NCBI GenBank assembly: GCA_019828565.1
Contig: JAHDYR010000045.1
Span: 10,680 to 74,679 of the forward strand
Length of the DNA: 64,000 bases
Direction of reading: 5' to 3'
Origin: Carpediemonas membranifera BICM
Lineage: Eukaryota > Protista > Fornicata
Shown: one piece after another, positions 11,839 to 12,340 of the stretch
Layout of the letters: each line of letters opens with the position of its first letter
How positions within the stretch are numbered: position 1 is the stretch's first letter
Position numbers and translations under genes: made by a program
The notes under the pieces: model-generated
Told to the model about the DNA's origin: nothing
Database searches by the model: none
The model's input: the letters and a program-made list of their open reading frames with translations, nothing else

Positions 11839-12340
11839 GAGCCCGAACGCAGCCGTGAATCATATAGCTACCCAGCGATGATCGGTGGGTTTCATAACTG
11901 GCCCAATTGCGTGGTACGGCAAACGCCAAGCCCGAAACCGCTTCGGCGGGTGCCTGAAAAATTGCAAACTGGGTCGAATGGTATGGAGAACATATCCCTG
12001 AGAGGAGCCTTGTAGGGGAAACCGAGCAGAAGGCCCCGGTGGCGGGTGTGCAGGGCAAGGCCTTGCGGGTGCCAGGCAGAACGGGGGCCCGAAGGACCCC
12101 CAAGAGTAAGACCTGGGTTATCCCGACTTTGGGGGTATCGGGCCAGCCAGTTGATAGGTCAACATGCAAGGGACTACCCAGCCTTACCAGCTGGACCCTG
12201 ACGGTGATGGTGCTAACGCCCCCAACGTAGTATCAGGCTCGCTCACGAAGGGAAGTCAACACGCTAAGGCGTTCCCGGGGACATGGGGTGGTGCAAACTG
12301 GTAATTCCCTGATTTACACAGGTGTACAGGATACGTTAAA
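11839..12340 (+). ncRNA. Conserved structured RNA in LINE 3' UTR (second copy at 5714-6200)
   Basis: Invariant blocks (GAGCCCGAACGCAGCCG, GGCGGGTGCCTGAAA, GTGCAGGGCAAGGC, AAGAGTAAGACCTGGGTTA, AACACGCTWAGGCGTTCC) separated by divergent but still pairing stems. Confidence 0.65.

Follow-up and report, generated by a model that had tools for sequence, protein, structure and literature searches.

A block-conserved, non-coding module at the 3′ end of an L1-like LINE of Carpediemonas membranifera and its predicted RNA fold

The window analysed here, a 64,000-nt stretch of the Carpediemonas membranifera genome, contains between about 6223 and 12358 a nearly intact L1-like LINE of the APE/RT type (unit B). 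The distal half of its 1.0-kb 3′ UTR is a module that occurs a second time just upstream of the LINE (copy A). The features of the locus are as follows.

3577–5553, plus strand: 659-codon open frame upstream of copy A, without RT or APE, homologous to an ORF in locus L126
5689–5697, no strand: candidate target-site duplication, upstream copy GGAGTGAAA, matching GGAGTGGAA at 8/9 positions
5698–6192, plus strand: module copy A, first invariant block from 5714 (alignment, blastn, nhmmer)
6193–6213, plus strand: terminal TTAAATT and (CTT)n tail of copy A (sequence read directly)
6214–6222, no strand: candidate target-site duplication, downstream copy GGAGTGGAA, directly after the tail of copy A
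6387–7343, plus strand: candidate ORF1 of B, stop-free over 319 codons, with weak coiled-coil-like Pfam matches only
7970–11338, plus strand: ORF2 of B, comprising AP-endonuclease, reverse transcriptase and a C-terminal part (Pfam, tblastn, PDB match)
11342–11838, plus strand: proximal 3′ UTR of B, missing from copy A, containing the stem-loop block 11419–11464
11839–12335, plus strand: module copy B, forming the distal, conserved half of the LINE B 3′ UTR (alignment with copy A, nhmmer)
12336–12358, plus strand: terminal TTAAATT and (TCTT)n microsatellite tail of B, a terminus type also found at L001, L126 and L127

ORF2 of B is collinear with the full-length relatives P0002 and P0003 over 7970–11242 (tblastn, three frames), the Pfam domains Exo_endo_phos and RVT_1 lie within 7970–10433, and the best PDB match is human LINE-1 ORF2p (E 3e-11). 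Two frameshifts, placed approximately near 9760 and 10290, interrupt the frame and may alternatively be assembly errors; the ORF pieces on either side of them were searched separately and not joined. As no other internal stops are present, the copy appears to be young. The proximal half of the UTR carries a 46-nt block (11419–11464) that is 85% identical to L127:9201–9243 and L126:9328–9370, in LINEs whose proteins are only 36–47% identical. The block folds into a conserved stem of 10 bp (GCU-CUGGGAU ... AUCCCGG-AGC) whose tip varies, and it may represent a second cis element with a wider distribution.

The stretches 5714–6200 and 11839–12340 are collinear homologues, with 320 of 475 ungapped columns identical in a MAFFT alignment (67%). 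The coordinates and blocks given by the first-pass annotation are borne out, as 5714–5730 equals 11839–11855 and 5975–5993 equals 12102–12120 exactly, and each of these sequences occurs only twice in the window. The invariant runs in the alignment measure 19, 17, 15, 14, 13, 13, 10 and 9 nt. Six runs are at least 13 nt long, whereas permutation of match and mismatch positions yields 0.84 such runs on average (p < 5e-5), and conservation of the module is therefore patchy rather than uniform, as expected for an RNA under constraint. When the two 6-kb units are compared with each other by blastn, the module is the sole match (72% over 318 nt, E 2e-36). Upstream of 5714/11839 identity is only 39% and the homology ends sharply, and the long invariant blocks are found at just these two sites within the whole window. 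Judged from the two copies available, the module is conserved between related lineages beyond its neighbouring sequence, given the 39% identity of the flank. Both copies occupy the extreme 3′ position with the tail directly after the module, and both terminate in TTAAATT followed by (YTT)n, as (CTT)n in A and (TCTT)n in B.

Stop-free stretches span the 5′ half of the module on both strands (on the minus strand 5566–5931 and 11771–12169), as would suit a decayed protein-coding remnant such as a former ORF2 C-terminus or an antisense ORF. Such a reading is opposed by the mismatches, which are distributed 57/55/44 over the codon positions and thus lack the three-base periodicity that the first-pass annotation had named as the mark of a decayed ORF. 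Indels of 1, 2, 4, 7 and 15 nt, not confined to multiples of three, break every frame, and the three frames score about equally in tblastx of the module. The open frames across the module gave no Pfam match, and the translated antisense ORF gave no relatives in a word search. The decayed-ORF reading is close to refuted, and the module is a real, block-conserved, non-coding LINE 3′-end sequence of approximately 480–500 nt.

Copy A is probably a 516-bp, 5′-truncated 3′-end fragment (5698–6213) of a sister LINE lineage. It is bracketed by GGAGTGAAA and GGAGTGGAA, which agree at 8/9 positions where ∼0.005 such matches are expected per 30-nt span. At the 5′ edge of copy B no target-site duplication was found, which indicates that copy B is contiguous with the UTR of B itself. 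A second full LINE, unit 'A' (1–5700), was considered and rejected, as neither Pfam (E ≤ 5), an HMM built from 45 clade members, nor tblastn detected APE or RT in this region. The 659-codon frame shares 27% identity (E 3e-35) with an 808-aa ORF of L126 (L126:11983–14406, minus strand). The latter opens a single retrotransposed LINE unit (8539 to about 14889, minus strand) that consists of the 808-aa ORF, a 320-aa ORF, an APE ORF, the UTR and the tail, and that interrupts a plus-strand LINE whose two halves abut in B coordinates. On account of the missing APE/RT in 1–5700, the homology to the L126 ORF, and a duplication at A but not at B, we consider it likely that the locus holds one long element (exonuclease-like ORF, ORF1, ORF2 and the UTR with module B), with copy A inserted between the first two ORFs; the 659-codon frame is possibly an ORF0 of this same element. 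The alternative, in which a separate element 'A' has the module as its end and B entered the tail of that element, is less likely. A tandem formed in this way was rejected, since a separate insertion accounts better for the 9-bp duplication that flanks copy A and since the L127 copy of the LINE is not immediately adjacent to the tail upstream of it. The first-pass annotation had assigned the module to the LINE 3′ UTR. For copy B this assignment stands, in that the module is 3′-terminal non-coding LINE sequence, whereas copy A is most likely a truncated insert and not the UTR of a second full LINE.

On either picture the host element has barely decayed, as the 659-codon ORF is open and ORF2 bears just two frameshifts. 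The 33% divergence of the module would thus have arisen between two active lineages rather than by decay in place, and the invariant blocks would then be a record of selection.

The discreteness of copy A, with its candidate target-site duplication and sharp 5′ edge, would also suit an independent non-autonomous retroposon of SINE type, about 516 nt long and with a tail borrowed from the LINE, with A as the full-length form and B having acquired or donated the same 3′ part. The sharing of 3′ ends by LINEs and SINEs is well known. Nevertheless, no tRNA-like head was detected by ARAGORN in 5000–13000, and no Rfam match such as 5S, 7SL or tRNA was obtained. Copy B lacks a duplication on its 5′ side and runs on from the UTR of B itself, a single discrete unit (5698–6213) is seen, and a 5′-truncated LINE copy explains A more simply. 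We regard the SINE-like origin as unlikely and prefer to treat copy A as a truncated LINE end.

The 659-codon ORF itself has no Pfam or PDB sequence match. Together with its L126 homologue it conserves the motifs IDFE ... AKGVE ... VCPYHxH ... HCxLAD, which we read as DEDDh-exonuclease-like. An AF2 model of low confidence (pLDDT 48) matched only RNase H-like folds, RNase T and the QIP exonuclease among them, at a TM of about 0.28. A LINE 'ORF0' of an exonuclease-like kind would be unusual. A 24-residue stretch of this ORF (TKNPKLGQIIMTNWEENDF...), encoded at 5263–5334, recurs at 37909–37980, ∼32.6 kb away, with 71% amino-acid and 78% nucleotide identity in otherwise dissimilar surroundings.

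The C. membranifera genome (WGS prefix JAHDYR) is 57% G+C (PMC8516963). The G+C content of the window is about 56%, and Ty3/gypsy elements with a chromodomain are abundant in it. Three Ty3/gypsy chromoviruses (29724–33550, plus strand; 51698–54673, minus strand; 57630–62177, plus strand) carry RT, RNase H, integrase and chromodomain, and their sense strands are A-rich like that of the LINE. Direct repeats of 100% identity, 1.5–5.9 kb apart, are present at 34898–35197 and 36419–36718, at 39897–40196 and 43976–44275, and at 28926–29017 and 33576–33667, with further identical pairs at 57580–57638 and 62205–62263 and at 49724–49836 and 55655–55767. Some of these flank gypsy elements and are probably LTRs; the pair at 39.9/44.0 kb flanks a Myb-like gene and a RabGAP-TBC gene.

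For the two-copy alignment, RNAalifold predicts about 110 pairs in a nested arrangement, with invariant blocks paired to each other. Its predicted parts, all on the plus strand, are the following.

5714–5772 in copy A (11839–11893 in B), plus strand: domain I hairpin, in which GAGCCC/GGGUUY and GCCG/CGGU pair blocks 1 and 2
5905–6011 in copy A (12032–12138 in B), plus strand: core, 34 pairs (RNAalifold)
6087–6146 in copy A (12230–12294 in B), plus strand: 3′ multibranch domain, 24 pairs with 3 two-sided changes

Domain I has a 7-nt internal loop and a tip helix of unrelated sequence in A versus B, and each copy folded alone yields the same shape. The core is closed by the helix GGYCCC/GGGRCC, which contains the only two-sided change of the core (U:A to C:G). 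It encloses an 8-bp hairpin, UGCAGGGC-AAG-GCYUUGYR, and a long 15-bp composite hairpin, CCCCYAAGAGU...ACUUUGGGGG, with the tip UGGG/CCYR; in the RNAalifold fold, 11/11 substitutions at paired core positions keep the pair. In the 3′ domain, a 6-bp closing helix surrounds three hairpins, including ACGC-UWAG-GCGU.

The consensus-fold energy of −110.5 kcal/mol corresponds to a z of −3.66 relative to alignments shuffled within conservation classes, a value of about −3.7 that is somewhat flattering because column shuffles do not preserve dinucleotides. The SCI of 0.58 exceeds the 0.47 ± 0.04 of the shuffles and was reached by 0/150 of them. The consensus fold is strand-biased, with a z of −3.7 on the sense versus −1.9 on the antisense strand for the whole alignment and of −4.9 versus −1.8 for columns 115–518, and in the 3′ domain the contrast is −3.0 forward versus +0.1 reverse. 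Such a strand contrast is the pattern expected of an RNA that uses G-U pairs. For single copies, the MFE is no better than that of dinucleotide shuffles (z −0.01 and −0.47).

The first-pass annotation had described the structure as covarying, which the present comparison does not sustain. Two-sided compensatory pairs number 10 in the two sequences as against 11.6 ± 3.4 in shuffled alignments, and projection of the own fold of either copy onto the other gave no excess of pair-preserving substitutions (p 0.36–0.71). One-sided changes that keep a pair are somewhat enriched (25 versus 17.2 ± 3.3 in shuffles). With only two copies and compensatory pairs at the level of the shuffles, covariation is not demonstrated. 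Of the four stems that had been quoted, 0/4 are truly compensatory on both sides. In CCGC/GCGG and ACGC/GCGT the arms are invariant and the loop alone differs, GACCCG/CGGGTC has a one-sided change to G-U pairs, and CCAGG/CCTGG forms in copy A only and is broken in copy B.

The same results bear on the possibility that the invariant blocks are linear motifs, that is, sites for ORF1p, ORF2p or host proteins, or DNA signals such as a promoter or terminator, with the fold being incidental to G+C-rich sequence. Compensatory changes without excess and single-copy folding no better than shuffles are in line with such motifs, as is the invariance of both arms in the longest blocks, which therefore say nothing about pairing. 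Blocks that are complementary to each other in a nested and collinear arrangement are not anticipated from linear motifs, nor are a consensus fold that clearly favours the sense strand over the antisense and a core in which every substitution at a paired position keeps the pair. Linear motifs are accordingly the less probable reading, albeit one that carries appreciable weight. A shared sense-strand fold of the module is moderately supported, and a conserved structure is plausible.

Searches for further copies were made at several levels. In the window and all loci, nhmmer matched only the two known copies, and so did the covariance model R1 of the core. The 19-mer AAGAGTAAGACCTGGGTTA returned nothing from viral contigs or metagenome contigs, a degenerate hairpin pattern gave in metagenomes a single chance match (L004) that is not alignable, and a 17-mer gave in bacterial and archaeal genomes at least 120 chance matches restricted to the seed. 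Exact look-ups of the window ORFs found none on record, and neither a 644-aa piece of B (E ≤ 1e-10) nor the 659-aa ORF retrieved anything in protein word searches. A HMMER scan of a library of 1.8 billion proteins retrieved few and distant relatives, ten of them at E < 1e-30, with at most 36% identity among long proteins. The LINE relatives lie on contigs of GCA_002919055.1 and GCA_019828565.1.

By ORF2, the LINEs at L001 and L125–L128 belong to the same clade as B (31–54% identity), and their 3′ UTRs of 0.7–0.9 kb have the terminus TAAATT(YTT)n as in B. Their distal UTR bodies have no similarity to the module by nhmmer, by Smith–Waterman comparison against shuffles or by the core covariance model, and L126 and L127 share with the UTR of B only the proximal 46-nt block. 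The UTR of family C was likewise rejected as a diverged module, its Smith–Waterman score being equal to that of shuffles. As the nearest relatives combine the same tail with unrelated bodies, the module is not needed by the clade as a whole, and its absence from them means that the clade has several interchangeable UTR bodies, of which the module is one.

Across LINE copies with at least four unrelated 3′ UTR bodies the end is the same, TAAATT and then (CTT)n or (TCTT)n (window 6193–6213 and 12336–12358; L001:6312–6331; L126:8539–8559 and 2101–2128, minus strand; L127:7573–7600 and 10014–10035), a terminus that may be a clade-wide priming signal. A LINE derivative that lacks RT, its APE ORF being followed immediately by the UTR and tail, occurs at L126:8541–10612 (minus strand) and L127:7959–10032 (plus strand). 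These C. membranifera copies are 99.5% identical over 2074 bp, the L127 copy being a 5′-truncated copy of the L126 unit. Such identity of copies without RT points to recent mobilisation in trans, and it is accordingly plausible that LINEs of this group choose their templates by the 3′ end.

The size of the module, its multi-helix prediction and its invariant single-stranded stretches, e.g. GAACGCA and AAGACC, would also be found in a catalytic or scaffold RNA of the LINE 3′ UTR, for instance a self-cleaving ribozyme, and ribozymes do occur in non-LTR elements (PMC8501958). The first-pass annotation had likened the module to a ribozyme or a large RNP scaffold. The Rfam scan that it proposed gave nothing, as none of 4227 families matched at the gathering score in the whole window or at E ≤ 10 in 5400–12500; HDV-like, twister, hammerhead and other Rfam models of self-cleaving ribozymes that retroelements are known to carry were thus without a match. 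The LINE ribozymes known to us process the 5′ end and not the 3′ UTR. The module fold, furthermore, is not unusually stable and the module is missing from the closest relatives, and we consider a ribozyme or similar RNA very improbable.

Our preferred explanation, to which we assign a probability of roughly 55%, is that the module acts in cis, within one lineage of 'stringent' APE/RT (L1-like) LINEs in a Carpediemonas-like metamonad, as a 3′ domain for recognition and priming. In the sense RNA, the invariant blocks would pair to form a long basal hairpin, a helix-closed two-hairpin core and the 3′ multibranch domain, and the segments between the invariant blocks would be free to vary. The ORF2 protein would bind this fold together with the terminal UUAAAUU(YUU)n and set the tail on the nicked target, where target-primed reverse transcription would begin. 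The element would then be a 'stringent' LINE that recognises its templates through its own 3′ end. The copies would derive from two sister lineages, both recently active, with copy A as a 516-bp, 5′-truncated insert, 'dead on arrival', that separates the upstream ORF from ORF1. The homology of the copies, the conservation of their blocks, their non-coding nature and terminal position and the strand bias of the consensus fold are observed, and protein binding and a role in priming are inferred.

The module would have its closest functional analogue in the 3′ UTR RNA of R2 (Bombyx, birds). This RNA is long and structured, as the module is predicted to be, lies like it at the very 3′ end of a non-LTR element, and combines sequence conservation with structure. 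The 3′ UTR that R2 proteins select is long and structured and in one case pseudoknotted (PMC11194090, PMC12222951), and the R2 protein binds its own 3′ UTR selectively through both sequence and structure (PMC11194090, PMC10499050, PMC12222951). The premise of the first-pass annotation that LINE 3′ elements are usually small single stem-loops was thus too narrow. The selection of the 3′ UTR as TPRT template by the element's own protein is a property of R2 that the module may share. R2 differs in having a restriction-like endonuclease, site specificity for 28S rDNA and no microsatellite tail, in contrast to the L1-like APE/RT and (YTT)n tail of the present element, and its 3′ UTR has no sequence or Rfam similarity to the module.

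In layout, the module is closest to the tails of 'stringent' LINEs (UnaL2/UnaSINE1; CR1/L2-type), which likewise join a conserved 3′ element to a tandem-repeat tail. The 3′ element of such LINEs, in the CR1/L2 type a stem-loop plus a short repeat tail, is recognised by the RT and allows partners without RT to be mobilised in trans, with which the RT-less Carpediemonas derivative and its 99.5% identical copies may be compared. LINE and SINE reportedly share their 3′ ends in the eel UnaL2/UnaSINE1 pair studied by Okada. The 3′ elements of these 'stringent' LINEs consist of a single stem-loop of some tens of nucleotides, as opposed to about 480 nt and eight or more conserved blocks in the module, which is unusually long for an APE-type LINE. 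The LINEs at L001 and L125–L128 in turn share with B the clade and the TAAATT(YTT)n terminus but not the distal UTR body.

A more far-reaching reading is that the module is a large, tertiary-structured RNA domain specific to carpediemonad LINEs that does more than bind the RT. We hold this to be improbable, though not to the degree of a ribozyme. If true, the domain would have about the size of a group I intron core or an RNase P specificity domain. The single-stranded invariant stretches GAACGCA, AAGACC and GCCUGAAA would make tertiary or protein contacts, and the additional function could be, for example, nuclear import, 3′-end formation, protection of a non-polyadenylated RNA or self-processing.

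To our knowledge, template choice by APE-type LINEs is well understood only for the poly(A)-dependent L1 and a few small stem-loops, and the long structured 3′ UTRs that we know of are documented mainly for R2. With two copies in hand, we offer the module as a stringent recognition domain in the form of a hypothesis that is useful rather than surprising. If true, it would add stringent, RNA-structure-based template choice to the APE lineage, in a deep-branching, free-living metamonad, and the RT-less derivatives nearby would provide a natural system for trans-mobilisation.
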